From Obrimoposthia wandeli (lineage: Eukaryota), in NCBI GenBank assembly GCA_977020255.1, contig CDROCS010005398.1, positions 1 to 64,000 of the forward strand: a DNA stretch of 64,000 nt, given 5' to 3'. Numbering within the stretch: position 1 is the first letter of the stretch; each line of letters opens with the position of its first letter. A model generated the notes under the pieces. That model was not told the DNA's origin, made no database searches, and saw only the letters and a list, made by a program, of their open reading frames with translations. Below are positions 40,737 to 57,207 of this stretch, piece after piece. A program made the position numbers and the translations under genes.

Positions 40737-41228
40737 TTGTTAACCCTCTAGTTAAAATCAAGAACATCTGATTTATTGTTTTAATTTATATATAAACAAT
40801 TTGAGTTAATGATACCAAATATTAAAAACAAGTAAGTGAAGCGTGTCGCATTTAACAAGTTTAACACACTGACAACATAACCTTGTAAAATTGAGCGCAC
40901 CAGAGCCCTCTCCCTCAATCGGCCAAAATTACGCCATAAACCAACCATTTACTGCCAGTTTTTTACCTAAAAAGCTTAAACCAAAAAACAGCGCCAAAAA
41001 TGGCAGGTTCCTTAGCGTAGCCAAGCAGCAATTAAACACTTATGTTACTGATATTTAAATTATGAGGTGATTGCTAAACAACATTAAAGATAAGTTATAA
41101 GCAGCCATCAAGAGTTAGTTTTCTTAACGTCTAAAACCAAAAAAGCCTGCTATCTAAGCAGGCATTCATCATTATCTTTTTATCACACCATCAACTCAAA
41201 CATGACACCACATTCAAGTTAAAACTGT

Positions 41229-41273
41229 CTATGTTGTAACAGACTATGTTGTAACAGACTATGTTGTAACAGA
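41229..41273. repeat. 15-bp tandem repeat x3 (CTATGTTGTAACAGA)
   Basis: Three exact units; a single variant unit is present in copy 3 (about 56166-56180). Confidence 0.95.
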
Positions 41274-41609
41274 CTAAAGTGCAGCAGCTTCTACGTCAGC
41301 TACAAGTGCGTTTATTTGCGCGATATTGTCTGTCATTTCAGCACGGAAATCATCCGCAACCGTTTTAACAGGTAGCGTAAGGTAAGTTTCAAGCTGTACA
41401 ACTAACAACTTCAATAACGCAGATTAAGTCGCCGTATTTTGCTCTTATTCTAACGCTAACAATGCAGAACTAATTGCAAAGTGTTGTGTTTTTGGTTGGT
41501 CTGCTTTCGCTAAATGCCTATTTACTTTTAACTCAGCGTAATCAACAAATTGTAATTTAACGTCGATGTCGTTGTTTAGCTTTTCTAAAAATTGTGTATT
41601 ATCAGTCAT
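41274..41609 (-). pseudogene. Hypothetical 'gene X', second copy with a nonsense mutation
   Basis: Paralog of 56181-56516. The codon TAC (Tyr) is TAA at 41424-41426. Confidence 0.88.
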
Positions 41610-41677
41610 ATGTATACCTTTGTTTTTAAATGCTTACTTAAACCAATAAGCAGCAATTTTTGAAAAATGGTATAACG

Positions 41678-41707
41678 AAAAAAAGCCTGCTCAATGAGCA
41701 GGCTTTT
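41678..41707 (-). terminator. tRNA operon terminator, copy 2
   Basis: AAAAAAAGCCTGCTCAATGAGCAGGCTTTT. Confidence 0.8.
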
Positions 41708-41736
41708 CCGAATTCCAATTACTTGGAATAAATAAG

Positions 41737-41813
41737 TGGTCGGTGATAGAGGATTCGAACCTCTGACCCCCTGGTTCCAAACCAGGTGCGCTACCAAGCT
41801 GCGCTAATCACCG
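41737..41813 (-). tRNA. tRNA-Pro(TGG), G37A variant
   Basis: Identical fold to the other copies, but the anticodon loop reads TT TGG AA instead of TT TGG GA. Confidence 0.85.
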
Positions 41814-42045
41814 AACATGGTGCGGAAGGAAAGACTTGAACTCTCACACCCTAAGATACTATACCCATGATCTTTGATAATGCTTCTCATCGAGAAAAAA
41901 GAATTGAAATTTAATTTAATAAGATCAAACTAGGAACATGAAAATATTACTCACTATTAGGCGACAATTAACTTGTCCGGTTGACGACAACTAGCTTGGC
42001 CGGTTTTGGTACACTCTAAGCATATGAAATCTTTCGGAGATCGAT

Positions 42046-43544
42046 ATGCCTGGGAAGCCCATAACCCAACAACAGGTTAAGTTATATATGTCTTATCGTA
42101 ATCAACCCAAACAATCTCAGGCTAAAGCAGCAGCGAAAGCCGGTATATCAGAGCGAACAGCTCGACGTATTGATACTCAGCAACATCAAGTGCAAGGTCA
42201 GCCAAGACAATACCGTACGCGTAAAGATCCATTTGATGGCTTGTTCGAGGCACATCTAGTGCCGTTATTAAAAACTAATCCGGCCTTACAACCAATTACC
42301 CTACTCGATGCACTAGAAGAGCATGCGCCTGGCAAATTCGACCATAAGCACTTGAGAACCCTGCAACGCAGGGTTAAACGCTGGCGAGCTAAAGAAGGAC
42401 CAGATCAAGAAGTTATATTCCTTCAACTTCACACTCCCGGTGATATGGGGATCTCTGATTATACTTGGGCAAATGAACTCAATATTTCGATTGCAGGTGT
42501 CTCTTTCAAACATAAACTTTATCACTATCGTTTGGTCTATAGCGGCTGGACATATGTGCAAACAATACTCGGTGGAGAAAGCTTTGAATCGCTTTCTTCT
42601 GGCTTTCAAAATGCACTCTGGGCAAGTGGTGGCGTGCCACTGAAACACCGTACTGATAGCCTTAGCGCTGCATTTAAAAATCACACTGAAGAGACGATAC
42701 TCACCCAGCGATATGAAGCTCTATGCAAACATTATGGAGTCAACCCGACCCGAAATAACAAAGGGGTCGCGCATGAAAACGGGGCAATTGAATCCCCAAA
42801 TCGTCATTTAAAACGGAAAATGGAGCAGCAGCTACTGTTGAGAGGAAGTCGTGACTTTAATGCGCTGGCCGACTACAACCAGTTCATCAATCTAATTGTC
42901 GCGAAAATTAATCGCCAGTGTAAAACACGATTTGAAGAAGAAAAAGTGCATCTCTCAGCACTACCTTGTCGTCGTACTAATGAATTTAGCGAGCAATTTG
43001 TCAAAGTATCATCAAGCAGTACTATCAATGTAAAAAGAGTGACTTACACAGTGCCATCACGACTTATCGGCAGTGGATTACTGGTACACATTTTTGATGA
43101 CCGATTAGTATTATTCTACGGCCATGAGCTAACACTTACGCTTGATCGCGTTTATGCTGAAGCTCCTTTACGAGCTCGCAGCATCAACTATCGGCATATT
43201 ATTCATTCCTTGGCCAAAAAACCGAATGCATTTAAGTGTTCACGCATTCGTGACGACATCGTTCCTGTTGGTGATATGTCACTGCTGTGGCAGCAATTAA
43301 CAGCTCATAGCGTGAGCGACTCTGATTGTAAATACATGGTTAACTTACTGTTGCTTGCACACAATTATGATTGTGAGGGAGCACTAGGCGTTATGTATTA
43401 GCGAGTATTGAAAGCGGTCAGCGAGCCACCATTGAGCAGTGCAGAAAATTGTTCGGCCCTGAACGAATTGAAGTGCCGAAGATTAGCACTCAACAACACA
43501 GTCTTAGTGGTTATGATAATTTAATCGGAGGGTTAAATGGCTAA
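42046..43544 (+). CDS. istA: IS21 transposase IstA (1-bp frameshift near 43390)
   Basis: HTH, DYTW, GGVP..HRTDSL, GVAHENGAIES. The tail continues in another frame to TAA at 43542-44. Confidence 0.88.
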
Positions 43545-44308
43545 TGGGCCGTACAAAGCTTACCTATATTGCTCTGGGAAGAGTTACGAGCATGCCATTG
43601 CTAAAGCATGGCCGGAATTGTCAAAGAAAGCAGTCGAAGAACAGTGGCAACCAGAAGTATTTCTCGCTGAGCTCTGTGAAATAGAAGCGTCACATCGCTA
43701 TGAAAACAAACTAAAACGTTTATTAAAAGACAGCCAATTGCCCATTGGGAAACAGTTGTCACAGTATGATTTCAGTGAGGTATCGGGGATCTCAGCACAG
43801 CAAATAAAACAAAAAATGCAGAACTTGGACTGGCTTAGGCAGGGTCACAATATCTTATTATTTGGCGCTAGCGGGCTTGGTAAAACGCATCTAGCCTCAG
43901 CGCTAGGTTACGCCCTCATTGAGCAATCAGTTCGGGTTAAATTCAGTACCAGTACGGCCTTAGTGCAGTTGTTACAGAGGGCAAGAGAAGAACTTAGGCT
44001 CGAGGAAGCGCTCAATAAATTAGACAAATACGAGCTGTTGATACTTGATGATATTGGTTATGTGAAAAAGAGTGACAGTGAAAGTCAGGTGTTATTTGAG
44101 TTGATCGCACATCGTTATGAACGTGGAAGTCTTTTGATTACAACAAATCAAGCGTTTAGTGAGTGGGATAGTATATTTGGTGACAATATGAGGACCAGCT
44201 GCAGCGATCGACAGACTTGTACATCACGCGGTAATTTATCAAATAGAAGGGGAAAGTTATAGAAAGAAACAAGCAATGAAATCGAATGCTAAAAACCGGC
44301 CAAGTTAA
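43537..44308 (+). CDS. istB: IS21 helper ATPase IstB (frameshifted ends)
   Basis: GASGLGKTHLA, LLILDDIGY, ITTNQAFSEWDSIFGD. AAIDRLVHHA...EGESYRKK appears in a shifted frame. Confidence 0.88.
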
Positions 44309-45476
44309 TTGACGCCAACCGGCCAAAGTAGTTGACGTCTAATACTCACACACCAAGAAAAGCTAACCTTAGAGTCACGCCACAGAAAAAGCAGTGATAA
44401 ACGTGAGTGTGACCGAATTAAAGCAATTTTACTCTCTGCTGAAGGTTGGTCAACAATGATGATATCTCAAGCTCTTCGAAATCATCAAACAAGTATTATT
44501 CGTCACCTAAATGATTATATATCTAATGAGAAACTCACTTCAGAAAATGGTGGTTCAGATAGTTATTTGAATGAAGTACAAACAGAAGTCGCTATCGCTC
44601 ATCTAAGTGATATTACTTACTTTCATATGCATGATATTCGAGACTATATAAAAGACACTTTTGATGTTGAATATTCAATTTCAGGTTTGCACAAATGGCT
44701 TCATCGTAACGGCTTTAGCTACAAGCAGTTAAAAGGCGTTCCTCACAAATATGAGCAAGAAAAACAAGATGTTTTTGTTGAGGAGTATGAAGTACTAAAG
44801 GCAACGGTAGCAAGCGATGAGCCTATTTTATTCATGGATGCAACACATCCTACCCAAGCGACAAAAGTCAGCAATGCCTGGATACAAACAGGAAGAGATA
44901 AGCCAATAGAAACGACAGGCTCACGTACTCGATTAAATATTGTAGGCGCAATAAGATTGGGTCATTTAGAGGATGCAATTACGCAACAATATCCGACTGT
45001 AAATGGCGAATATATAATTGATTTTTTTTGCTGTGTAAAAGAGAAATATCCTCAAAGGAAGACAATTCATTTAATACTTGATGGTGCAGGATATCACCGT
45101 AGTAAGGTCGTCAAAAGTAAAGCGATAGAATTAGGCATTGAACTTCATTATTTGCCCCCCTACAGTCCAAATTTAAACCCTATTGAGCGGTTGTGGAAAG
45201 TAATGAATGAGCATGCAAGAAATAACAAGTATTTTTCATCAGCCAAAGAATTTCGACTGAGCATAGATACCTTTTTTGATGAGACTCTACCCAATATAGG
45301 GAATACTTTGAATGGTAGAATCAATGACAAATTTCAAACCTTCGACTTTTCATCTTGAAAGGCGACGGGTATAGAACCTAAGTCTAGCGTGTCTGCCACT
45401 TTCGCACTAACTATCAACTTATCAGCACGTAATTCTGGCAAGGGTCGATAACATCACCTTAGCGTGTTATCAAATA

Positions 45477-45553
45477 TGGGGCGACTGAAGGGGATTGAAC
45501 CCTCGACAACCGGAATCACAATCCGGGGCTCTACCAACTGAGCGACAACCGCC
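45477..45553 (-). tRNA. tRNA-His(GTG), C9 variant
   Basis: G-1, CCGGA TT GTG AT TCCGG, intact T-loop; position 9 is C as in copy 1. Confidence 0.85.
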
Positions 45554-45618
45554 ACAAACTTGTTGTTAATTTCGCGATGTAATTATAAATAATACATTAG
45601 CAAAACTAATCTTAAAAA

Positions 45619-45664
45619 TGGTAACCCCTATAGGATTCGAACCTATGGCCTACGGCTTAGAAGG
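45619..45664 (-). repeat. 3' 46 nt of tRNA-Arg(TCT): att-like duplicated half
   Basis: Matches 57020-57064 (1 mismatch) and ends just 5' of the anticodon loop. Confidence 0.9.
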
Positions 45665-46174: not shown

Positions 46175-47233
46175 CTACTCGTCTGCACCTTTAGGTCGAC
46201 GCATATTACAAGTCTGACAAAGTGGATTAGTCATGTAATTCTCACGTAAGTGATGGTATTCAGTACTGTGCCAAATATCTGCCACAGATTTTTGATTCAG
46301 GTTACCAAAATTTCCCAATTTTTTTCGTTGCTGATCTGGTGCACAACAAACATTAAAACGCCCATTTGGATCTACCCACATCTCTTTGCCAAGAAAAGGA
46401 CACTCCCCCTCTGGAGAAATATTATCTATTTCCGTTGGATCCAATTCAAAAAAGTTTTCGAGTAACATCTTATGTTCGCTAACATGATTGTGCCTATCTA
46501 CAATGTCATGGCAAATTTTCACGGTCTCATTCCAACACTTTATTGAGTCACTATCCTTACGCAATGATAACGATTTTATCTCTTCAAAATGTGCCCATAA
46601 ATGATGACCTTTTACACGGTCAAAACCAAGTTCAATGGCCATTTCGACCATCTGTGGGATCTCGGCTATATTCGACTCCAAAAATGTTAATTGCATTGTC
46701 ATTTTACAATAATTATTGGTATCTTTAGCCACTTGATCACGAACAGCAATAAAACGCTTAGCATGATCTATGTGCTGCGTAAAACTAGACCGTGGCATGA
46801 TTTGCTCTTGTGTTTTAGCTGTTGCTCCATTCCATGAAATCTTAACATCACTGCCAATCGGTGTTATCCGCGTGGCCCAGTATTCAACGTTCTTTTCTTT
46901 CTCCGGACTTGGGAAAGTACCATTTGTTGTAAGGTTTATTTTTAGATTAAGCTCTTCACACAAATCTAAAATCAAATCAAAATGTCGATATAAAAGTGGC
47001 TCACCCATTGTTGAAGGAATAAGCTCTGTTATGCCAATCTCAGCAGCTTCTCGTACAACTTTTTCTACCAGCGCCTTATCCATATTTTTTCGTTGGGTTC
47101 CATTTCGCTTTCGCTCACTCTGAGGTTCAGCATGAATAGAATGATCCTCACACATAACACAATTTAGGTTACATTGATCAGGGTTAGTATCAATTGTTAT
47201 ACGCCACGGTTGAGTAGCCCTATTTTTTTTCAT
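46175..47233 (-). CDS. Radical SAM protein with C-terminal SPASM/twitch domain
   Basis: CNLNCVMC, TMGEPLL, TTNGT; C-terminal CPFLG..WVD.NG...VCC...GNL....DIW...CQTC. Confidence 0.92.
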   Translation of the reverse strand: MKKNRATQPWRITIDTNPDQCNLNCVMCEDHSIHAEPQSERKRNGTQRKNMDKALVEKVVREAAEIGITELIPSTMGEPLLYRHFDLILDLCEELNLKINLTTNGTFPSPEKEKNVEYWATRITPIGSDVKISWNGATAKTQEQIMPRSSFTQHIDHAKRFIAVRDQVAKDTNNYCKMTMQLTFLESNIAEIPQMVEMAIELGFDRVKGHHLWAHFEEIKSLSLRKDSDSIKCWNETVKICHDIVDRHNHVSEHKMLLENFFELDPTEIDNISPEGECPFLGKEMWVDPNGRFNVCCAPDQQRKKLGNFGNLNQKSVADIWHSTEYHHLRENYMTNPLCQTCNMRRPKGADE

Positions 47234-48522
47234 ATCAATCCCTTATATATTTCTTCCATATCTCTTATTTGTTTGGTGATATCTGGAATGTCGCCATTAT
47301 CACTAAACGGATAGCCTCGTTTACCTAATTTTTCTGACCACGAGGGATCATCAACCATACGCTGCATCTGCTTGGCCATATCTTCAACTGAACGATGTTC
47401 AAATAACAAGCCATTGACGTCATGGTGAACATACTCCGCCATACCGCCTGTATTTGCAGTAATAACAGGAACTCGCGCTTGCTGCGCTTCATGAATAACT
47501 AAAGGAGAGTTTTCCACCCAGATTGAAGGTACAACGATCGCATCAACTTGATTGAATACATCACGAACTATCTCTTGATTCTTATATTCAGCCACCCATT
47601 CAATTTTTTCACATTTCCCTTTTGGTAAGGCTGCAGCAATATCTTTTAGCGCTTTTGTCTCCTGGCCATGCTCCCTGCCCCAGATACGTAATATCGCATC
47701 TCCTTGAACCAACCCAAAAGCATTAATCAATTGATGGATCCCCTTCGCTGGAATATGCGTACCAATGTAACCAAAAGTAAATGATGGTTCTTGATTGCGT
47801 TCACGGTTTTTCATTCTTTCGCGATCGAAACCATAATCGAGATAAACGCTTTTTTCCTTTGGTAACCCAAAATCTTGTTCATAACGATTTTTAAGGTAAT
47901 GGGCTGGAGAAATAAACAGATCAACCTGATCAACTACTTGACGAATATGTGCCATTCTCCTTTCTACCCAGCCCTCCCAATAAGCAATATCAATTTCTCT
48001 TTCTTCATTAGCTCCTGAAAAATAACGAGCATAGCATTGTGTTGCACATTTTTTGTTTTCTTGACCATCACAAGCAGCCCACAAGTTCTGTTCTTGAGAA
48101 TGCATCTGCATGAACTGCCCTCGAGGGCACATCAACCAATAGTCATGTAATGTATATACAACAGGAATATTATTTTTCTTTGCTTCAAAAACAAGTGATG
48201 TGGATAAGTGATTAAGGTGACCAATATGCACTATATCTGGTTTCACTTGCTCAAGTACTTTTGCAAATTCTTGGTCAATGACATCCAAACGGTAACGGTC
48301 TTTATGCCTAGGGTTATTCGTTATATATAATTTAATGCGTGGATCATCAACGTCAGTTTCATAACGCATTGCCCCATCAGCTCTAAAAGGGTCTTCTTCT
48401 CGTGTAAATACATGAACCTCATGCCCTTGTGCAGCAAGGCCAAGGCAAAGTGTTTGAGAATATACTTCAGAACCCGCATTATAACGCATAGGATAACCAT
48501 GGATAACTTTCAAAATCTTCAT
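47230..48522 (-). CDS. Glycosyltransferase family 4 (GT-B)
   Basis: KPDIVHIGHL, YTLHDYWLMCPRG, VPSIWVENSPLVIHEA, GGMAEYV...NGLLF. Confidence 0.92.
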   Translation of the reverse strand: MKILKVIHGYPMRYNAGSEVYSQTLCLGLAAQGHEVHVFTREEDPFRADGAMRYETDVDDPRIKLYITNNPRHKDRYRLDVIDQEFAKVLEQVKPDIVHIGHLNHLSTSLVFEAKKNNIPVVYTLHDYWLMCPRGQFMQMHSQEQNLWAACDGQENKKCATQCYARYFSGANEEREIDIAYWEGWVERRMAHIRQVVDQVDLFISPAHYLKNRYEQDFGLPKEKSVYLDYGFDRERMKNRERNQEPSFTFGYIGTHIPAKGIHQLINAFGLVQGDAILRIWGREHGQETKALKDIAAALPKGKCEKIEWVAEYKNQEIVRDVFNQVDAIVVPSIWVENSPLVIHEAQQARVPVITANTGGMAEYVHHDVNGLLFEHRSVEDMAKQMQRMVDDPSWSEKLGKRGYPFSDNGDIPDITKQIRDMEEIYKGLI

Positions 48523-48525
48523 GTT

Positions 48526-49431
48526 TTATTCACCTAACTCTTTTAATTTAAAATCATTCACCAACAGCTCAATACCTTGCTTAGGTGTCACTTTAGCCTT
48601 CCAGCCTAAAAGTAACTTGGCACGCTCAGGATCACCAACAAAACGACTGACATCATATCTACGTGAGGGAGCAACTTGGATGGTCGCATCACTTTGTGCA
48701 GCTTGAATGGCAAACTCAGCCGCTTCTTGCAAAGTCGTCGCAATACCTGGTAATAAATGAATTGGCGGTAAGTCCATAATTCCCGATTCCAGTTTTGAGA
48801 TAATTAGCATTAACCCATCGATAGTGTCGGTGATATGTGTAAAGTCAAATGTATGATTCAACCCATCAACGCGTAGTTGTTCACCTAAAACTGCTGCGCG
48901 ACAAAATGCTGGTAGTACTCTATCTACATGATCATCGATACAACCGTATACATTGGCTAATCGTACAATAGCAGTTTGTAACCCCTGTACTCTTGCCGTC
49001 ATTGTCGAATCTTCCATTGCCATTTTAGATCTACCATAAATATTCACAGGATTCACAACACAGCTTTCAGCAACGGGCAGTTCAGTGGGTTCCCCATACA
49101 CTTCCCTACTACTTGCAACTAACACCCAAGGTGACAACTCACTTTCTAAAGCAATTTTAAGCAATTTCTGGCTTGCCTCCGCATTAGTTTTCCAACATAA
49201 ATCAGGGTCATTCTCACCCCAAACTACGCGAGAGACAGCTGCAAGATGTACTACCCCAGAGCATCCTTGAATTGCCTTTCTAATTTGTTCTTCATTGCAA
49301 ATACTGCCTTTAAACTCAGCAAATTCAGCGACAAGATCCAATCCAACCACGTTAAAGCCGGCATGATTCAATGCAGCGGTTAGCGCCCGGCCCACCAGCC
49401 CTTCATGCCCGGTAATTAATATCTTTTTCAT
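48526..49431 (-). CDS. NAD-dependent sugar epimerase/dehydratase (extended SDR)
   Basis: ILITGHEGLVG, VVHLAA, ASSREVYG, YGRSK, RLANVYG, FDFTHITD. Confidence 0.92.
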   Translation of the reverse strand: MKKILITGHEGLVGRALTAALNHAGFNVVGLDLVAEFAEFKGSICNEEQIRKAIQGCSGVVHLAAVSRVVWGENDPDLCWKTNAEASQKLLKIALESELSPWVLVASSREVYGEPTELPVAESCVVNPVNIYGRSKMAMEDSTMTARVQGLQTAIVRLANVYGCIDDHVDRVLPAFCRAAVLGEQLRVDGLNHTFDFTHITDTIDGLMLIISKLESGIMDLPPIHLLPGIATTLQEAAEFAIQAAQSDATIQVAPSRRYDVSRFVGDPERAKLLLGWKAKVTPKQGIELLVNDFKLKELGE

Positions 49432-49487: not shown

Positions 49488-51044
49488 CTAAGAAGACCAC
49501 AGGTATTTAACACCTAGATTTTTAGCTTCATCTATTGCTTGTTGGAATGAACCGACGATAGGCACACCACGTCCGTTAAATGAGGTATTTATCACCCCAT
49601 ATATCTGATATTCATCATGCAGTGTTCTTAAAATCTGATAAATATGGTTATTGTCGAAAGAGCTCTTGCTAATGACTTGGGCGCGTACTGAATCATCAGC
49701 ATGAATACAACCTGAAAATGCCATTTTCCATGTTGATTTTATCTGCCATGCGCCCAACATAAATAATGAAAGGTTTGAATCGGGTTTATAACCAATGAGT
49801 GCAGCTTCCGCTACTTCTGGGAGCATGATCGGCGCAACGGGTCGATACCATTCCCGTTGCTTAATGTCTTCGCTTAAATATTTTCTGAGTGATTTTGAGT
49901 CGGGGCGAATTAATAAACTTCGATGACCTAATGCTCTGGGGCCTATTTCAGCATCCCCTTTAAATACAGCCACAACTTCACCAGCTGCGATAAGCGCTGC
50001 CGCCTTAGCACTTTCTTGAAATACTTCAATACCTTCTGTATTAACCCCATCGCTATCATCTATATGATTTAAAAAAGCATTGTGAATTTTTATCTCGCTG
50101 CCCTTTTGCCACTCAAAGAATGCTGCAGCGCCCAATGCGAGCCCGCAATCGCTTGGTGCTGGCGGTATGTATATATTTTTAAATCCCAATTCACGCTCAA
50201 TTCTTGTATTAACATGAATATTTAAGGCCGCGCCACCTGAGTAATACAGTGAAGTAGCACCTGTATTTTTTTTGAATTTTTCGATATAGCTTAACGCTTG
50301 TATTTCTATTTCACGTTGCATGCAGGCAGCAATGTCAGCACCTTTCATACCTTCAACATCAACTATTTCGGCATTGTCCATATACCAGTTATTTGTCTTT
50401 AAATTCTGATGCAAAGCTTGGGAATATTGACCGTAACTTGCTAGCCCCATCAGTTTTCCAGGTAAAGATAAATGATCGTCAAGCGATAAGTTTAATATTC
50501 TGGCAGACAATGGATTGGCGTTAAAATTATTCACAGCCTGCTTTAGCTTTGCATGCCAGCTATGATCTAAATGACATATTTTTTTGCCATCAAAATACCA
50601 TGCTGATGCGCAGGATTTCGATGCGCCACCATCAATATGGATAAGTAAACTATTTGCTTTAAAGCCACCAAAGAAAGGTAAGCATGTACCAATGTGAGCC
50701 ATCTCATGTGCAATAACATGTTTATTTTCAGCTGTCTTTTTAAGCATCTCTTCAATAGCAAAGTTCGTGATATCGTCAAATATAACGTCACCACAGTCAC
50801 TATGAAATTGATTGCTCATAAACGAATTAGCCAACACCCATTGCACATCATCTTCATTGTTTAACCAAGGCTTGAGTAGTTTACTAATATATTCATTCAG
50901 TCTGCCATCATGTTTATGCTGCGTGAACCTTTCTAACTCGCAGCTGTAAATAACAGCGCCATTTTGCATAACAGCAACACCATGATCATGAGAACGGTAT
51001 TGCCCCGTGACATCCGCATCGCCATATACTCCAATCGTAAACAT
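49488..51044 (-). CDS. O-carbamoyltransferase (NodU/CmcH/TobZ family)
   Basis: SHD, ELERF..HKH, HEMAH, IDGG, GKLMGLASYG, GGAALN, SDCGLALGAA, EIGPRALGHRS, REWYRPVAP, NTSFN. Confidence 0.93.
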   Translation of the reverse strand: MFTIGVYGDADVTGQYRSHDHGVAVMQNGAVIYSCELERFTQHKHDGRLNEYISKLLKPWLNNEDDVQWVLANSFMSNQFHSDCGDVIFDDITNFAIEEMLKKTAENKHVIAHEMAHIGTCLPFFGGFKANSLLIHIDGGASKSCASAWYFDGKKICHLDHSWHAKLKQAVNNFNANPLSARILNLSLDDHLSLPGKLMGLASYGQYSQALHQNLKTNNWYMDNAEIVDVEGMKGADIAACMQREIEIQALSYIEKFKKNTGATSLYYSGGAALNIHVNTRIERELGFKNIYIPPAPSDCGLALGAAAFFEWQKGSEIKIHNAFLNHIDDSDGVNTEGIEVFQESAKAAALIAAGEVVAVFKGDAEIGPRALGHRSLLIRPDSKSLRKYLSEDIKQREWYRPVAPIMLPEVAEAALIGYKPDSNLSLFMLGAWQIKSTWKMAFSGCIHADDSVRAQVISKSSFDNNHIYQILRTLHDEYQIYGVINTSFNGRGVPIVGSFQQAIDEAKNLGVKYLWSS

Positions 51045-51048
51045 ATAG

Positions 51049-52317
51049 CTAACCTTTATATTCAGAGATTAAACGAACCGATAAATCATTGCCCGATTTA
51101 ACAAAACAGATTCCAGCTAGATAATCACACCAATCATTTCTATTAGGTACTTTCAAACCAAGAAATGACATCAAGCATACAATATGCAGATCATGGGAAA
51201 CCAAAACAGAAATTGATTCTTTAGATAGCTGACTTTTAACAAAATCAATTAACTCGTTTGAAGCATCTGCAATTGGTCGCATACCACTCGCAAAACCAGT
51301 CGTAACATAGTGTTCAATAAAAGCATAAAAATCCGCCGCCATTTCTGATTCATGTTCAGAAGAACCATCAAAATATACACCGGGATCACCTAGTAATGGA
51401 TTTAATTCTATAGGCTGTTGTGAGTCATAACTTGATAATATATCGCGCCCTGTTTCAACGCAGCGTGGTACAGGACTAGTGATGACCTTAAGTTTTTCAG
51501 CCGGAGTAAAAAATGATCCAAATACAGTAGCACGCTCTTTACCTTGTCCCGTTAAGGTGACGTCATGACCCCAGTTCGGCGTATCGGCATGAATAACTTG
51601 CCTCTCGGCGTGTCTAACTAGCATTACCATCTGATCGTTATCACCAATCATATCGTTTATAGTAGCTATATTGACTGGAGGATATTTTTGTAAAATCAAG
51701 GTATAGTGGCCATTCTCATGCAAACGTACCAACTGACCATCCAGTGTTTCACAAAATGCATAGTTATTGTAAAACGGCTCCGCGCGTTTAAAACGATGTT
51801 GGTAAATCGCATTTCCATTAACATTAATATGAAAGAAACCATGCTCATCTCTAACGACCGCAAAACCTTTATGGAAAGGTTCAGCATATTCAAAACTATG
51901 ATTATATATTCGCTGTCCAACGTGATTAATATGAAATGCTTTTTCTCCTTGATACGCAACGGCACGTTCATAACGGTAGTCACCCACATAACTAAATCGA
52001 CTTACGTAAACGGGCTCACCAGTCTTATCGATATGATAAAATCCCGTACCGTCTTCAACAACGCAAACATTACCTTGAAAATTACCTGACCATTTAAATT
52101 TATGGGAATGAATAGTCCCTCCCAACACATCAATATGAAAATAACCTAACTCATCAACAACCGTTGCCACGGCATTATAAAAACCAAATGTTTTTATAAA
52201 TCGATGTGAGTAAGCTTCTTTTTCATTCTCATAAATATGATATGCACCCGAAGTATCTATCACGGCAGCAAGTCCTTCTGGAAAATGAAAACTCATTCTT
52301 TGTTGTTCATCTATCAT
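51049..52317 (-). CDS. WG/KWG-like repeat protein fused to a C-terminal histidine phosphatase domain
   Basis: About five ~36-aa repeats (F..G.A.V.D..G.(Y/F)HI...G..(I/A)Y...F); then LVRHAE, SPVPRCVETG, VLVSHD. Confidence 0.8.
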   Translation of the reverse strand: MIDEQQRMSFHFPEGLAAVIDTSGAYHIYENEKEAYSHRFIKTFGFYNAVATVVDELGYFHIDVLGGTIHSHKFKWSGNFQGNVCVVEDGTGFYHIDKTGEPVYVSRFSYVGDYRYERAVAYQGEKAFHINHVGQRIYNHSFEYAEPFHKGFAVVRDEHGFFHINVNGNAIYQHRFKRAEPFYNNYAFCETLDGQLVRLHENGHYTLILQKYPPVNIATINDMIGDNDQMVMLVRHAERQVIHADTPNWGHDVTLTGQGKERATVFGSFFTPAEKLKVITSPVPRCVETGRDILSSYDSQQPIELNPLLGDPGVYFDGSSEHESEMAADFYAFIEHYVTTGFASGMRPIADASNELIDFVKSQLSKESISVLVSHDLHIVCLMSFLGLKVPNRNDWCDYLAGICFVKSGNDLSVRLISEYKG

Positions 52318-52399: not shown

Positions 52400-52603
52400 T
52401 TACCAAGCTCTTTGTTGTTTAGTTAAATGCCAACCTCGCCCATTAGGACACTGGTATACCCGAAGTTTGACGTACTCTGTTTCCGCTAAAAAATCAGCGG
52501 TTTCTTGAGCCTCAGACTTTGAGCCATAGGTTGTTTTTACCTTGCCACCAGCACCTGTACAACTTTGACATAGTTCATTAGCGTTCATTATTTCCATGTA
52601 CAT
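52400..52603 (-). CDS. Small Cys/His protein, putative Zn-binding
   Basis: CQSC...YQCPNGRGWHLT; first ORF after the sigma54 promoter. Confidence 0.65.
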   Translation of the reverse strand: MYMEIMNANELCQSCTGAGGKVKTTYGSKSEAQETADFLAETEYVKLRVYQCPNGRGWHLTKQQRAW

Positions 52604-52696: not shown

Positions 52697-52712
52697 TGCA
52701 CAACAGATGCCA
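52697..52712 (-). promoter_or_regulatory. Sigma54 (-24/-12) promoter for the island B operon
   Basis: Minus strand TGGCATCTGTTGTGCA, with GG and GC at the canonical spacing of TGGCACG-N4-TTGC; divergent from a sigma54 activator. Confidence 0.72.
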
Positions 52713-52881
52713 AGTTAAAATTAACTACAAGATAAAACAAATTAATCAAATATAACAATTACTTAAATTATAAGTTTGACGAAGGACTCATTTCAGCATT
52801 AATTAATTTACATAAGACTTAACTTTTATGTAAATTAAAACAAACATAAAGGTTAATCTAATTTGATCATTTAAGGAATTA

Positions 52882-54726
52882 ATGATGACAGGAACATTTA
52901 CTTTCATAACTCCTTTTTTCCAACGCCACGGAGTTGGATATCTGGACGTTATATTACACACAGTGGATAAAGAGCATGACTCACTGTCAAGTGCCGGTTA
53001 TCAATCGAAAGAACATGACCAATATGATGCATTCACTAACACATTAAAAAATGGAAAATTAAGCCAACTTAACAAAGTTTTTTACTTATTACCTAAAGGG
53101 TATAAAAACCACAAAGACGCACCTTCGCGATGGAAAGAATTTGTATCGAAAGAAAAAATCAATTTGATCAAAGAAAGTATCGAATCAACATCTAACAACC
53201 CAAAAAATAGCGAGGTAGATCTAGACAAATTAATCACGTATTTGAATAAAGAAGATGGATTGTTTCCTAGTTATGAATGGTTAAAAGGTGAGTGGCGAGA
53301 AATGCCCGATCTTTGGCATATCATTAACGAGTTCAGCCTTGCGACTCAGGTTGAATGGTATAAGAATCATTCACCTGTGTATCAAAAGCATAATGCTCTA
53401 ATTCATTTTGTTGAAATAGACACAACATATTCTCAATTAGAAAATGAATATGAAGTAACTGCTGCATTAAAAAAATGGACTCAGCAAGAGATATTTAACG
53501 AACATACATATATTAACCTCTGGGGAACTGCCACAGCATTTCAACTGGCATGGCACTATTTAGCTTGGTCATCACCAAGGTTAAAACCCATTAGCTTCAT
53601 AAAATGTAAAACATTAAAAGCGACTAAAGATAAACAGCGATTTACCCCACTAATAATCGAATCAGTAAACAAAAATTTATTAGACAAATTAGAACAACAC
53701 AGTCAAAAATCAACATTATCCCAACAACAAAATAATACTGCAGCATGGCTAAAAAAGTATAAAAGTCTTGATGATAACTTTACGATCTTACTTCTAGGTC
53801 CAAAAGGCACTGGTAAGACAAAAGTCGTAGCTGAAATATATAATGAAAACAGCACCGGTAAAGATAACCGAATAATATCTATTAACTGTGCTCAGTTTCA
53901 AAGTAACCCAGAAATTGCACGTAGTGAGCTTTTTGGACATGTAAAAGGATCATTTACTGGTGCTAATGAGAATAAAGAAGGGGCATTTAACGAAGCTAAT
54001 AATAAAGTCTTATTCTTAGATGAGATTCACCATCTTGATAAAGCAACACAATCGATGCTTTTAACCGCGTTACAAACTGATAATGAAGGTTTTTTCAGGT
54101 TTTCTGCGTTAGGAACTACCAATATCCAAACAACAAAATTTCAGCTTATTGTCGCAAGTAATATAAAACACGAAAGTTTAGAAGCCCATATACTCCCCGA
54201 TCTCTTAGACCGTATCAGTCAACGGGTATTAAAATTTGATGCTTTAAAATCCGGAACCACAATAAAAAAAGAATTTAATAGTGTATGGATGTTCATGAAA
54301 ATCTCAGAAGACGCCGTAAACCCCTTACTCTCAGGTGTAAAAACTTACGACTCTAGATTCGAAAAATGGCTAACTAAAACATCACATACATTTGAAGGAA
54401 ATTACCGAGATTTACAAAAAATAGCCATTCTGTGCGCAGACTATCAACGCAGCTGCGATAATCCAGATTTAATACCATCAGACCTTTCTTTGGTTGAATA
54501 TATTAAAACTAATTGGAGAATAAAGACCCGTAAAAAAGACATTACGATTGAGAACTTCCTTGATGAGCATAATCGTCTATCTCTCAAAGAGATCACTAAT
54601 GAATTTAAATCCAAATTAGTCCGTTCAGCTGAAATATTATGTGGAGATCAAAAATCTGCAGCAAAAATGCTTGGCATCACAGCTAAATCATTAATAGAAA
54701 TAAAGAAGAGAGATGAGCCGTCCTGA
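52882..54726 (+). CDS. Sigma54-interacting AAA+ activator, RtcR-like, with putative CARF-like N-terminal domain
   Basis: GPKGTGKT, INCAQF, SELFGHVKGSFTGA, LFLDEI, DLLDRI, GNYRDL, C-terminal Fis-type HTH (DQKSAAKMLGI); no receiver domain. Confidence 0.85.
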   Translation: MMTGTFTFITPFFQRHGVGYLDVILHTVDKEHDSLSSAGYQSKEHDQYDAFTNTLKNGKLSQLNKVFYLLPKGYKNHKDAPSRWKEFVSKEKINLIKESIESTSNNPKNSEVDLDKLITYLNKEDGLFPSYEWLKGEWREMPDLWHIINEFSLATQVEWYKNHSPVYQKHNALIHFVEIDTTYSQLENEYEVTAALKKWTQQEIFNEHTYINLWGTATAFQLAWHYLAWSSPRLKPISFIKCKTLKATKDKQRFTPLIIESVNKNLLDKLEQHSQKSTLSQQQNNTAAWLKKYKSLDDNFTILLLGPKGTGKTKVVAEIYNENSTGKDNRIISINCAQFQSNPEIARSELFGHVKGSFTGANENKEGAFNEANNKVLFLDEIHHLDKATQSMLLTALQTDNEGFFRFSALGTTNIQTTKFQLIVASNIKHESLEAHILPDLLDRISQRVLKFDALKSGTTIKKEFNSVWMFMKISEDAVNPLLSGVKTYDSRFEKWLTKTSHTFEGNYRDLQKIAILCADYQRSCDNPDLIPSDLSLVEYIKTNWRIKTRKKDITIENFLDEHNRLSLKEITNEFKSKLVRSAEILCGDQKSAAKMLGITAKSLIEIKKRDEPS

Positions 54727-54736
54727 TAACGGTCAG

Positions 54737-55636
54737 TTATTCTAGCCCTCCTTTTTGGTAGCCGACGCGCATACTCAGGTATTGAGCCAAGGCTAATAAA
54801 ATATTTATAGGGCTAATTTTCGCAGGCAAAAATAGCGTGGGTTTTAGATCTAACTGATACTTCAGCGCCAATTGTTTATTTCCTCTGCCATAGCGTTTAA
54901 ACCGATTAATAAAACCAATAAAACCATCATCAAATTCATGCTGAGTGCAACTCGCGAATTGGTAGTCGATCTCACCCACCTCTAGTAACCTGAAGGCCAG
55001 ATCAATATCTTCACCACCAGCCTGTTTAAACTCAGGATCAAAAAAGCCTACTTGTCTTATTGCTGATTTTTGGATCAGGCAGTTGGCTGTAACCAAGTAA
55101 TCGGGGCGCTTTCTTTCTAAATATGTCGCTTCAGGAGGGATGAGTGTCTCTTGAGTTTTATAATAACGAGAAAGGTAATCATCCGACACAACATCTATTC
55201 CACCAGCGTAAGCTAATACTTTATTATTATTAGTACAGTATCCAGATATGGTGCTTACCGTTGGTATGCAGTCCGAATCGGTAAACAATATCCACTCTCC
55301 ATTTGCCAACGACACACCTTTATTTCTTGCTGCCGCAGGCCCCACTTCCTTACAAGTTGAAAGAATTAGAGATGTAGGATAATCATTCGGTAAATGCAAT
55401 GCTGGGGTCGAATTATTATCAACAATAATTATTTCTTGTGGATAATGTTCAACAGAAGTGACTTCGGTAAACTCAGCTAAAAAACGATCAATACCAGCCT
55501 GATTATTTTTGACTGGAATGACTACACTGATATTTTTAGCCTCAATGTTCTTTAATGTTTCTAACGTTTTCTTTTTATTGGGGCTATAACCAAGTGTACT
55601 TAAAAGCGTCATACCAAAATCCTTGCAGATAAACAT
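54737..55636 (-). CDS. Glycosyltransferase family 2 (GT-A)
   Basis: ISVVIPVKN, IIIVDNNS, GPAAARNKG, ILFTDSDC, GFFDPEF...GEDIDL. Confidence 0.92.
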   Translation of the reverse strand: MFICKDFGMTLLSTLGYSPNKKKTLETLKNIEAKNISVVIPVKNNQAGIDRFLAEFTEVTSVEHYPQEIIIVDNNSTPALHLPNDYPTSLILSTCKEVGPAAARNKGVSLANGEWILFTDSDCIPTVSTISGYCTNNNKVLAYAGGIDVVSDDYLSRYYKTQETLIPPEATYLERKRPDYLVTANCLIQKSAIRQVGFFDPEFKQAGGEDIDLAFRLLEVGEIDYQFASCTQHEFDDGFIGFINRFKRYGRGNKQLALKYQLDLKPTLFLPAKISPINILLALAQYLSMRVGYQKGGLE

Positions 55637-56069
55637 CTATATATCAAAACATAACTTAACAAAAAAACGTTGAGATATACAATAAATATCCACTGTAATG
55701 AATTAACAATACCTCTTTTACTGTGTGTGCGTAAAATCATTATCGTACATCAAACAGCTAGTAATATCGGATTCTAGCTTGTGAATGTGGGAATATCGGT
55801 ATTTCAATAAATAAGTCAATTATCGGAAACCTCTCGATGATTTCATCTACCACGTGTTTCTTGAAGGGCGTTAACCAGTGTGAATTAAGACCAAATTGTT
55901 ACCAAGAAGCATTTAGCTAATGTTATTTTAACAACATCACAGCTATCAAATGCGGATCTTAACAGCATTCTCGAGATCGTTAAATGCAAAGACACCATAC
56001 ATCATTGTCGAGTAAACAGGTGGCAATTCACGACCTCATTAAAAATTATTTTTATTAACGCCTAAAACC

Positions 56070-56097
56070 AAAAAAGCCTGCATCTTCAGCAGGCTTT
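56070..56097 (-). terminator. Terminator downstream of gene X
   Basis: AAAAAAGCCTGC-atcttca-GCAGGCTTT; counterpart at 41139-41166. Confidence 0.75.
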
Positions 56098-56180
56098 CAT
56101 CTTTCTATATACTATTCACTAACACCATCAACTCAAACATGACTCCACATTCAAGTTAAAACAGTCTGTATTGTAACAGA

Positions 56181-56516
56181 CTAAAGTGCAGCAGCTTCTA
56201 CTTCAGCTACAAGCGCGTTTATTTGCGCGATATTGTCTGTCATTTCAGCACGGAAATCATCAGCAACTGTTTTAGCAGATAGCGTAAGGTAAGTTTCAAG
56301 CTGTACAACTAACAACTTCAATAACGCAGAGTAAGTCGCTGTGTTTTGCTCTTCTTCTAACGCTAACAATGCAGAGCTAATTGCAAAGTGTTGTGTTTTG
56401 GGTTGGTCTGCTTTCGCTAAATGCTTATTTACTTTTAACTCAGCGTAATCAACAAATTGTAATTTAACGTCGATGTCGTTGTTTAGCTTTTCTAAAAATT
56501 GTGTATTATCAGTCAT
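56181..56516 (-). CDS. Hypothetical helical protein ('gene X', 111 aa)
   Basis: RBS, ATG and own terminator. The paralog at 41274-41609 shows synonymous and conservative changes, which supports coding status. Confidence 0.75.
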   Translation of the reverse strand: MTDNTQFLEKLNNDIDVKLQFVDYAELKVNKHLAKADQPKTQHFAISSALLALEEEQNTATYSALLKLLVVQLETYLTLSAKTVADDFRAEMTDNIAQINALVAEVEAAAL

Positions 56517-56584
56517 ATGTAGGCCTTTGTTTTTAAATGCTTACTTAAACCAATAAGCAGCAATTTTTGAAAAATGGTATAACG

Positions 56585-56614
56585 AAAAAAAGCCTGCTCA
56601 ATGAGCAGGCTTTT
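56585..56614 (-). terminator. tRNA operon terminator, copy 3
   Basis: AAAAAAAGCCTGCTCAATGAGCAGGCTTTT. Confidence 0.82.
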
Positions 56615-56643
56615 CCGAATTCCAATTACTTGGAATAAATAAG

Positions 56644-56720
56644 TGGTCGGTGATAGAGGATTCGAACCTCTGACCCCCTGGTCCCAAACCAGGTGCGCTA
56701 CCAAGCTGCGCTAATCACCG
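56644..56720 (-). tRNA. tRNA-Pro(TGG)
   Basis: Full cloverleaf, CCA, 77 nt. Confidence 0.97.
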
Positions 56721-56724
56721 AACA

Positions 56725-56809
56725 TGGTGCGGAAGGAGAGACTTGAACTCTCACACTTTTCAATACTAGAACCTAAATCTAGCGCGTCTACCAATTCCGC
56801 CACTTCCGC
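56725..56809 (-). tRNA. tRNA-Leu(TAG)
   Basis: Full cloverleaf with variable arm, 85 nt. Confidence 0.97.
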
Positions 56810-56880
56810 ACTAACTATCAACTTATCAGCAGGTAATACTGACAAGGGTCGATAACATCACCTTAGCGTGTTATCAAATA

Positions 56881-56957
56881 TGGGGCGACTGAAGGGGATT
56901 GAACCCTCGACAACCGGAATCACAATCCGGGGCTCTACCAACTGAGCTACAACCGCC
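56881..56957 (-). tRNA. tRNA-His(GTG)
   Basis: G-1, T8A9, GTG anticodon, TTCAA T-loop, C73-CCA. Confidence 0.96.
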
Positions 56958-57019
56958 ACAAACTTTTACATCAACCCGCTTTGGTAAGCGAATTAACTTC
57001 TACTTTTACGTAGATAATA

Positions 57020-57096
57020 TGGTGACCCCTATAGGATTCGAACCTATGGCCTACGGCTTAGAAGGCCGTTGCTCTATCCAACTGAGCTAAGGAGTC
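57020..57096 (-). tRNA. tRNA-Arg(TCT)
   Basis: GACTCCTTAGCTCAGTTGGATAGAGC AACGGC CT TCT AA GCCGT...TTCGAAT...CACCA. Confidence 0.97.
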
Positions 57097-57097
57097 G

Positions 57098-57174
57098 TGG
57101 TCGGTGATAGAGGATTCGAACCTCTGACCCCCTGGTCCCAAACCAGGTGCGCTACCAAGCTGCGCTAATCACCG
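57098..57174 (-). tRNA. tRNA-Pro(TGG), first gene of the operon
   Basis: Identical to 56644-56720. Confidence 0.97.
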
Positions 57175-57207
57175 AACGTTGGAGGCAATGCCTTGTCAAC
57201 GAGGTGG

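Follow-up and report, generated by a model that had tools for sequence, protein, structure and literature searches.

Here we describe a regulatory locus in the window, the whole 64,000-nucleotide (nt) stretch of DNA analysed (positions 1 to 64,000 of contig CDROCS010005398.1, Obrimoposthia wandeli assembly GCA_977020255.1). On its plus strand, positions 52882–54726 encode an RtcR-like sigma-54 activator of 614 amino acids (aa), recognised from its open reading frame (ORF), the Pfam family PF00158 and PADLOC models. A tight six-gene operon runs divergently from it on the minus strand, from 52603 to 46175, and a sigma-54 promoter element between the two faces the operon. We consider the partnership of this regulator with this operon the strongest new result of the analysis, and it is strongly supported.

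The activator, its operon and its promoter

From the N terminus, the activator consists of a CARF-like sensor domain (residues 1–263; 52882–53670), assigned from an AlphaFold2 (AF2) model, Foldseek and hhalign; a sigma-54 interaction AAA+ module (approximately residues 293–511; 53758–54414), assigned by Pfam, alignments to bacterial enhancer-binding proteins (bEBPs) and motifs; and a C-terminal Fis-type helix-turn-helix (HTH; residues 588–610; 54643–54711), assigned from the end of the RtcR_PspF1 model and the HTH of ZraR. Residues 293–447 matched PF00158 (Sigma54_activat) with an E-value of 2.6e-33 and 115.5 bits, against a cutoff of 20.2. As the preliminary description of this DNA had remarked for receiver, GAF and PAS domains, the sigma-54 AAA+ module was all that Pfam recognised; the scan returned no receiver, GAF, PAS, V4R or other known sensor domain.

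The AAA+ module carries the Walker A motif GPKGTGKT (306–313), the Walker B motif LFLDEI (377–382) and the sigma-54 contact loop GSFTGA (356–361), the last conserved among close homologues. Every motif named in the preliminary description lies where it was placed, including DLLDRI (440–445) and GNYRDL (506–511). These latter two had been called RtcR-like, but they are rather the family's versions of motifs general to bEBPs, and their counterparts in RtcR read EDLYARI and GNFREL. The solved bEBPs NifA, ZraR, LuxO, NtrC1, FleQ and PspF align to residues ~296–514 only, with ZraR alone also reaching the C-terminal HTH, weakly; this HTH is conserved within the family. With an AAA+ domain above the Pfam threshold, a GAFTGA-type loop and both Walker motifs, the protein is by sequence a bEBP of the RtcR-like CARF-AAA+-HTH group, and this domain order is strongly supported.

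The first operon gene (52400–52603), called as an ORF by sequence, encodes a 67-aa Cys-rich (CxxC ... C) zinc-ribbon-like protein that matches nothing in Pfam, PADLOC or the PDB and has just three close homologues. Domain matches identify the other five products, all likewise on the minus strand: a 422-aa protein combining WG repeats with a histidine phosphatase (His_Phos_1; 51049–52317), a 518-aa carbamoyltransferase of the NodU/CmcH type (49488–51044), a 301-aa NAD-dependent sugar epimerase/dehydratase (SDR; 48526–49431), a 430-aa GT4 glycosyltransferase (47230–48522) and, encoded last, a 352-aa radical S-adenosylmethionine (SAM)/SPASM enzyme (46175–47233). The GT4 enzyme also matches the Pfam family 'GT4 in conflict systems' (GT4-conflict), and its nearest NCBIfam relatives are BshA and MshA. 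Glycosides of phosphorylated acceptors are usually made in two steps by a GT4 enzyme and a phosphatase, as with MshA or sucrose-phosphate synthase, and the cassette may follow this route.

We found 13 close homologues of the activator, in Colwellia, Shewanella, Photobacterium and metagenomes. Searching 1.84 billion representative proteins with a profile of the N-terminal alignment yielded 40 proteins, nearly all of 590–670 aa, so the sensor domain is essentially always paired with an AAA+ module; a scan of genome contigs for the family gave only three loci. The loci compared below are those of a Colwellia metagenome-assembled genome (MAG; L002), Enterovibrio MAGs (L003/L004), Shewanella (L005) and Photobacterium swingsii (L006/L007), together with the loci of proteins P0014, P0026, P0027, P0035 and P0046 (L008 to L012, in that order). 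The same cassette lies divergent from the regulator in Shewanella L005 and Colwellia L002, and the partnership is kept where the sensor is only 18–34% identical to the query (L008, 33%; P0020, 32%; L009, 25%; L010, 24%; L011 and L012, 18% each).

Within this conserved pairing the enzymes vary in form. The GT4 and radical-SAM enzymes are fused in P0020 and L008, and in L011 (4985–6421) and L012 (1867–3267) the histidine phosphatase is swapped for an unrelated protein that joins a Pol-beta nucleotidyltransferase to Y_phosphatase3. Because an unrelated phosphatase has taken its place by non-orthologous displacement, phosphatase activity as such appears to be needed in the pathway. The core of the cassette is therefore GT4, radical-SAM/SPASM enzyme, phosphatase and carbamoyltransferase, with the SDR optional. 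This core remains beside the regulator family even at sensor identities of just 16–25%. L012 also has a gene with a domain associated with the type IX secretion system, hinting at Bacteroidota.

The small first gene is less constant. It is zinc-ribbon-like in the window, Colwellia and Enterovibrio, degenerate in Photobacterium and absent in Shewanella L005, and in L010 (8515–8805) it encodes a DUF4258 protein. The corresponding proteins of L008 (2549–2941) and L009 (4563–4937) match no Pfam or PADLOC family; by eye they carry a DUF4258-like motif, and we presume that the DUF4258 family is related to RelE-type RNase toxins. A small ORF beside a SPASM enzyme could suggest a peptide that is made on the ribosome and then modified (RiPP), a reading that we set aside because several loci lack the ORF or have one from a different family. 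We likewise rejected a viperin-like reading of the radical-SAM enzymes, whose pVip matches are weak and confined to the generic radical-SAM core.

The preliminary description had foreseen a biosynthetic output for the regulator, and the activator is indeed coupled to biosynthetic-type enzymes without rtcBA: tblastn with E. coli RtcA and RtcB found neither gene, whether in the window or across 11 related loci. Among PADLOC v2 defence models, the operon enzymes had no match beyond a weak, generic similarity of the radical-SAM enzyme to pVip (E = 4e-7).

The sigma-54 promoter that had been proposed to face the activator lies at 52697–52712 on the minus strand (TGGCATctgttGTGCA), as identified by motif scan and conservation. 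Read along that strand (TGGCATCTGTTGTGCA), it is TGGCAT-ctgtt-GTGCA, with the invariant GG and GC at canonical spacing. A GG-N10-GC motif matching the consensus at no fewer than 9 of 11 positions recurs on the same strand, 158–188 nt upstream of the regulator's ATG, in five close lineages (L002, L003/L004, L005, L006/L007 and the window), where the background is ~0.02 per 200 nt of one strand. Weaker matches (8/11) occur at 133–155 nt in L008, L009 and L010.

The gap between promoter and regulator also holds a candidate enhancer, an upstream activating sequence (52822–52854) that we delineated by its conserved layout. In L002–L006 the gap contains AACCTTTTGGTT (AACCTTTAGGTT in L005) followed 20 nt on by TTAACC-W4. 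The window has the corresponding sites AACTTTTATGTA (52822–52833) and AACATAAAGGTT (52843–52854), 21 nt apart, 60 and 39 nt from the regulator's ATG (61 and 39 in L006) and ~110–145 nt upstream of the −24 element. This paired-site layout has the standard geometry of a bEBP enhancer, and since it sits in the regulator's own upstream region, the activator could also regulate itself. Given their conservation, we regard both the promoter and the two-site enhancer as strongly supported. A weak sigma-70-like promoter, TTTACA-18-TAAATT (52807–52836, plus strand), faces the regulator and shares sequence with the palindrome and enhancer region; in DNA this AT-rich the match does not exceed chance expectation. 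Autoregulation might act through this overlap. Scanning the surroundings of the locus for sigma-70 promoters and terminators was uninformative in such AT-rich DNA.

A CARF-like sensor related to that of RtcR

Profile comparisons connect the activator to RtcR. For the whole protein the top NCBIfam model was RtcR, with query residues 175–515 aligned to model positions 71–415 at 131.3 bits, which misses the 650-bit cutoff of the RtcR equivalog NF038308. The top PADLOC model was RtcR_PspF1--CARF_AAA_HTH (E = 5.2e-62, 208 bits), in which query residues 260–608 align to positions 137–465 of 468, followed by RtcR_PspF2 (E = 2e-35, from activator residue 184) and RtcR (E = 8e-31).

In hhalign, the whole family aligned to E. 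coli RtcR with an E-value of 1e-33, and the alignment runs into the CARF domain. We also compared the family's N-terminal columns with 20 RtcR N-termini (residues 1–185), removing the AAA+ domain from both sides; query 172–249 aligned to RtcR 68–146 with a probability of 90.7 and an E-value of 1.2e-6. The aligned segment, LIHFVEID (173–180) ... TYINLWGTATAFQLAWHYLA (209–228) against RtcR ... YLIHITTGTHVAQICWFLLA, is the one that the preliminary description had matched by eye, and both comparisons reproduce it. The Pfam family RtcR (PF06956) is matched by 4 of 34 family members (best E = 7e-4), with the activator itself giving no match even at E ≤ 10. BLAST of E. coli RtcR against the related loci extends back to RtcR residue 84 in L011. 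On these alignments we regard residues 172–249 as homologous to the RtcR CARF domain, a homology that covers only half of the domain; the sensor is a distant, insertion-bearing relative of the RtcR RNA-damage sensor.

The AF2 model of the sensor, built from a 37-sequence alignment, reached a pLDDT of 93.7 and a pTM of 0.91. An earlier model from 14 sequences had a pLDDT of 78.9 and weak Foldseek matches only, which already leaned towards CARF proteins, with an identical order of elements. Strands at 6–11, 63–71, 174–179, 209–212, 238–244 and 257–262 alternate with helices, and in both models a helix block (approximately residues 84–170; 53131–53391), supported by predicted secondary structure and conservation, lies between the second strand (63–71) and the third (174–179). 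CARF domains are defined by a six-stranded Rossmann-like core with a terminal β-hairpin of strands 5 and 6 (PMC4012209). The sensor is accordingly predicted to be a CARF-type six-stranded Rossmann-like core broken by a helical insertion of ~100 residues. The preliminary description had instead placed ~100 extra residues at the N terminus; since both models put them between strands 2 and 3, with strand 1 already at 6–11, that placement was wrong.

The Foldseek matches that combined high probability with low root-mean-square deviation (rmsd) were CARF proteins of several families (probability 0.84–0.99, E = 0.016–0.09, rmsd 3.6–9.5 Å). They include Can2 (8bao; probability 0.99, 5.8 Å over 239 columns), Csm6 (8jbc; 0.96, 3.6 Å over 113 columns), Cdn1 (8z4i; 0.95, 9.4 Å over 238 columns) and the Sso2081 ring nuclease (7ygh and 8htw; 0.89–0.92, target TM 0.42–0.46). 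Enlarging the alignment from 14 to 37 sequences sharpened the CARF signal without bringing it to significance. Against proteins of 180 residues that comprise a CARF domain only, the alignments span 240–250 columns, which suggests a match reaching across the insertion, although Foldseek does not report the aligned query residues. The PDB entries searched include no solved structure of E. coli RtcR residues 1–190.

Conservation was assessed over 37 sequences that are 16–71% identical to the query in the sensor domain. The few nearly invariant positions include H16-G17, which lie in the loop following strand 1, and N212, with which strand 4 ends, as well as Q47, L227, F239 and R253-F254. N212 is followed by a consensus G-T..Q that is also present in RtcR. 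The insertion holds four further nearly invariant residues (W145, Q156, W159 and S164), among the most conserved of the family. Because such residues fall after strand 1 and after strand 4, where CARF domains form their pocket, and within the insertion, both pocket loops are conserved and the insertion is probably a functional part of the sensor. Because the insertion carries the most conserved residues and homology covers half of the domain, the ligand or partner may differ from that of RtcR. The RtcR-like CARF-AAA+-HTH identity proposed from the sequence alone thus finds support in the NCBIfam RtcR model, the PADLOC models, the N-terminal hhalign match and the high-probability Foldseek matches.

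Genomic setting, a model of the switch and its alternatives

The operon, the regulator and an adjoining GT2 gene form a low-GC segment, with a GC content of 34–36% at 52–56 kb and ~38–48% elsewhere in the window. The GT2 gene (54737–55636, minus strand), convergent with the regulator, encodes a glycosyltransferase that best matches MftF, the glycosyltransferase of mycofactocin (E = 1.5e-31, below cutoff); in none of the other loci that we examined was it seen beside the regulator. The segment lies between duplicated parts of a tRNA cluster, at 41106–41816 and 45382–45664 on the left and 56037–57177 on the right. The repeat pairs are 41106–41816 with 56037–56723 and 45382–45561 with 56786–56965, and they include a 300-nt repeat (41248–41547 and 56155–56454) with a 94% match. 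The left pieces carry tRNAs for Pro, His and a partial Arg, and the right piece reads Pro-Leu-His-Arg-Pro.

Two insertion sequences lie side by side at 42046–45358, between duplicated tRNA pieces: an IS21-type pair, made up of a 451-aa ORF without a Pfam match upstream of an IstB-like ATPase gene, and a DDE_3 (IS630-like) transposase. Ordinary chromosomal genes make up the flanks, and we saw no integrase at the island. Low GC, duplicated tRNA pieces, insertion sequences and ordinary flanks together make the cassette look horizontally acquired, and the segment resembles an island that entered a tRNA array by insertion or recombined inside it. The cluster beside the island includes a tRNA-Leu(UAG) gene (56725–56809, minus strand). 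The 5' half of tRNA-Leu(UAG) is the best ligand of the RtcR CARF domain in Salmonella (PMC7790460), and its presence here is probably a coincidence.

The best explanation of the locus as a whole, to which we assign a probability of about 70%, is an RtcR-like CARF activator that switches a divergent operon of sugar-type enzymes through sigma-54. In RtcR the CARF domain represses until ligand binding permits oligomerisation (PMC7790460). By analogy with RtcR and with bEBPs in general, the C-terminal HTH would bind the paired AACC-W4-GGTT-type sites at 52822–52854, and the CARF-like domain would hold the AAA+ module inactive at rest. A ligand or partner acting on this domain would free the module and so gate assembly of its ring, which would touch sigma-54 through the GSFTGA loop, open the promoter at 52697–52712 and set off transcription from 52603 to 46175. 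Homology with RtcR and other CARF domains leads us to guess at a nucleotide- or RNA-derived ligand, with the conserved helical insertion as an added lid or partner-binding surface. As for the output, our guess is a glycosylated acceptor, which could be a small molecule or a macromolecule and would undergo dephosphorylation, carbamoylation and modification by the radical-SAM enzyme.

Several findings weigh against this explanation. In the Photobacterium and Enterovibrio loci, regulator, promoter and enhancer are kept but face a different operon (L006, 5856–9788; also L003/L004), which encodes a degenerate zinc-ribbon-like ORF, a 441-aa protein with a weak MatE match, a 284-aa radical-SAM enzyme and a fusion of an AAA_17 kinase with a phosphoribosyltransferase. 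This alternative set suggests nucleoside or nucleotide chemistry, and since these members face it, the tie between the regulator and a single output is not strict. Activator residues 1–290, searched alone against PDB sequences, Pfam and NCBIfam, gave no match, and hhalign found no similarity to the RtcR N terminus for the first 80 residues or for the insertion (72–172). The comparison of the sensor with known CARF and RtcR domains that the preliminary description had suggested came out divided: the profile match and the high-probability CARF proteins support it, but Foldseek against the PDB gave nothing at E ≤ 0.001, with TM-scores ≤ 0.46. At the DNA level, the −12 element reads GTGCA rather than TTGCA, the relaxed pattern TGGCAY-N6-TGCW has one match in the 64-kb window where 0.93 are expected by chance, the window's enhancer sites have 1 and 3 mismatches to AACC-W4-GGTT, and rpoN is not in the window.

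The alternative that survives best, though we think it unlikely, is that the CARF-like domain has been repurposed as an ordinary metabolic sensor that binds a substrate, intermediate or product of the pathway, for example a nucleotide-sugar, and that the operon is a housekeeping-type accessory pathway for a glycoside or the envelope, unlinked to RNA damage or infection. Metabolite sensing is found in many bEBPs, the top conserved residues lie in the family-specific insertion, outside the RtcR-like positions, and the operon enzymes perform sugar chemistry and lack defence matches beyond the weak pVip similarity. Against this, the sensor retains the RtcR-type strand-4 sequence (G-T...Q) and its homology to the CARF domain of RtcR can still be detected, the locus is an island of low GC that lies among clustered tRNA genes and insertion sequences, the GT4 enzyme matches a conflict-system family, and the L010 operon begins with a DUF4258 protein, presumably toxin-like.

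Somewhat more doubtful is the proposal that the sensor is governed mainly by a protein partner, with the small first gene or an enzyme feeding back through the insertion. It has a precedent in RtcA and RtcB, which RtcR needs for activation and which bind its CARF domain (PMC9650030). Given this precedent and the conserved insertion, the ligand may be another one, or a protein may act in its place. The promoter is usually followed by the small gene before any other, and the insertion is as strongly conserved as a protein-interaction surface would be; yet that gene is absent in Shewanella L005 and belongs to more than one family across loci.

About equally doubtful is an elaboration of the switch model, in which the activator controls an undescribed inducible conflict or stress system. 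Here the CARF sensor would perceive a nucleotide signal of infection or RNA damage, with the insertion as a lid tuning recognition, and would drive the GT4/radical-SAM/phosphatase/carbamoyltransferase pathway through sigma-54. The pathway would make a carbamoylated glycoside for chemical defence, with an aminoglycoside-like logic, or glycosylate and carbamoylate a macromolecule. If our assumption about DUF4258 is right, the DUF4258 protein could generate the inducing RNA ends and so provide positive feedback.

We think it highly improbable that the N-terminal domain has no relation to CARF and simply adopts a Rossmann-like fold of the generic kind, with all similarity to RtcR coming from the AAA+ module. 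The failed single-sequence searches and the lack of a significant Foldseek E-value speak for it, as does the ranking by E-value, which the methyltransferase AviRa heads and in which XRN/Rat1 and Dam also stand high. These non-CARF matches, however, superpose at 11–15 Å, above the CARF matches of several families; the profile match persists with the AAA+ module removed from both sides; and some family members match Pfam RtcR directly. Least probable of all is that the −24/−12 match arose by chance, at its expected frequency, and that the operon is read independently of the activator from a sigma-70 promoter of the kind whose hexamers abound in AT-rich DNA, since the motif recurs at the same distance and on the same strand in five lineages, loci that face a different operon among them, at the usual distance from a conserved enhancer and adjoining a sigma-54 activator gene.

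Comparison with known CARF and sigma-54 systems

CARF domains are known as signalling sensors of type III CRISPR systems and, in RtcR, as sensors of RNA damage. Here a CARF subfamily found across lineages has as its output a conserved enzyme cassette, not a nuclease or repair enzymes. Should the sensing logic persist, the system would connect signals of nucleic-acid damage or infection with the induction of small-molecule or glycan chemistry; should it be lost, the family is an example of the CARF fold re-tooled for another ligand. With six genes, a single activator and a single mapped promoter and enhancer, the system is compact, and because the family occurs in lineages with cultured representatives (Shewanella and Photobacterium), ligand, regulon and product are directly testable.

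RtcR is the activator of the rtcBA RNA-repair operon, and its ligands are tRNA 5' halves that terminate in a 2',3'-cyclic phosphate (PMC7790460). The window activator shares with RtcR of E. coli and Salmonella the domain order, with a CARF domain (divergent in sequence), a sigma-54 AAA+ module and an HTH, and the divergent arrangement facing a sigma-54 promoter. Their AAA+ cores are 36% identical, the second half of the CARF domain is homologous, including the strand-4 G-T...Q motif, and both proteins lack a basic residue after strand 4. The activator differs in its ~100-residue insertion, an unalignable first third of the domain, a different regulon and no rtcA or rtcB nearby. Because both the RtcR equivalog score and the rtcBA linkage fail, we do not file it as RtcR.

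RtcR homologues outside the Rtc pathway have been reported alongside R-M (restriction-modification) systems (PMC4012209) and CoCoNuT superoperons (PMC11090510), usually co-directional with them, so the idea of a rewired RtcR sensor is not new. As in the window, an RtcR-like sensor there drives a non-Rtc operon, but the partners are co-directional restriction or CoCoNuT genes, whereas here the partner is a divergent enzyme cassette without a nuclease. BrnT-like genes have been reported beside RtcR-associated CoCoNuTs (PMC11090510), and these neighbours resemble the small first genes of L008–L010. The PADLOC models RtcR_PspF1 and RtcR_PspF2 may represent the published homologues of R-M and CoCoNuT systems; the activator matches the AAA+ and HTH parts of RtcR_PspF1 but not its CARF part (positions 1–136). 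Our literature searches found no description of the subfamily, of its conserved helical insertion or of the coupling to a GT4/radical-SAM/SPASM/phosphatase/carbamoyltransferase cassette, and the sensor domain of the subfamily largely escapes Pfam and NCBIfam models.

Canonical CARF sensors (Csm6, Can2, Cdn1 and Sso2081) are matched by the sensor model with high probability and without a significant E-value. In Csm6, Can2, Cdn1, ring nucleases and Csa3 the sensor is fused to a nuclease or a winged HTH, whereas the activator has a sigma-54 transcriptional output and a large helical insertion. We noted no CRISPR locus in those parts of the window that we looked at, where no dedicated scan was run. 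With bEBPs of the PspF, NorR and NtrC types the activator shares the AAA+ sigma-54 module and the Fis-type HTH, but PspF has no sensor domain, NorR has a GAF domain and NtrC a receiver, none of them CARF-like. The family constitutes a new subfamily, and a new regulon, of the known RtcR-like CARF activators.

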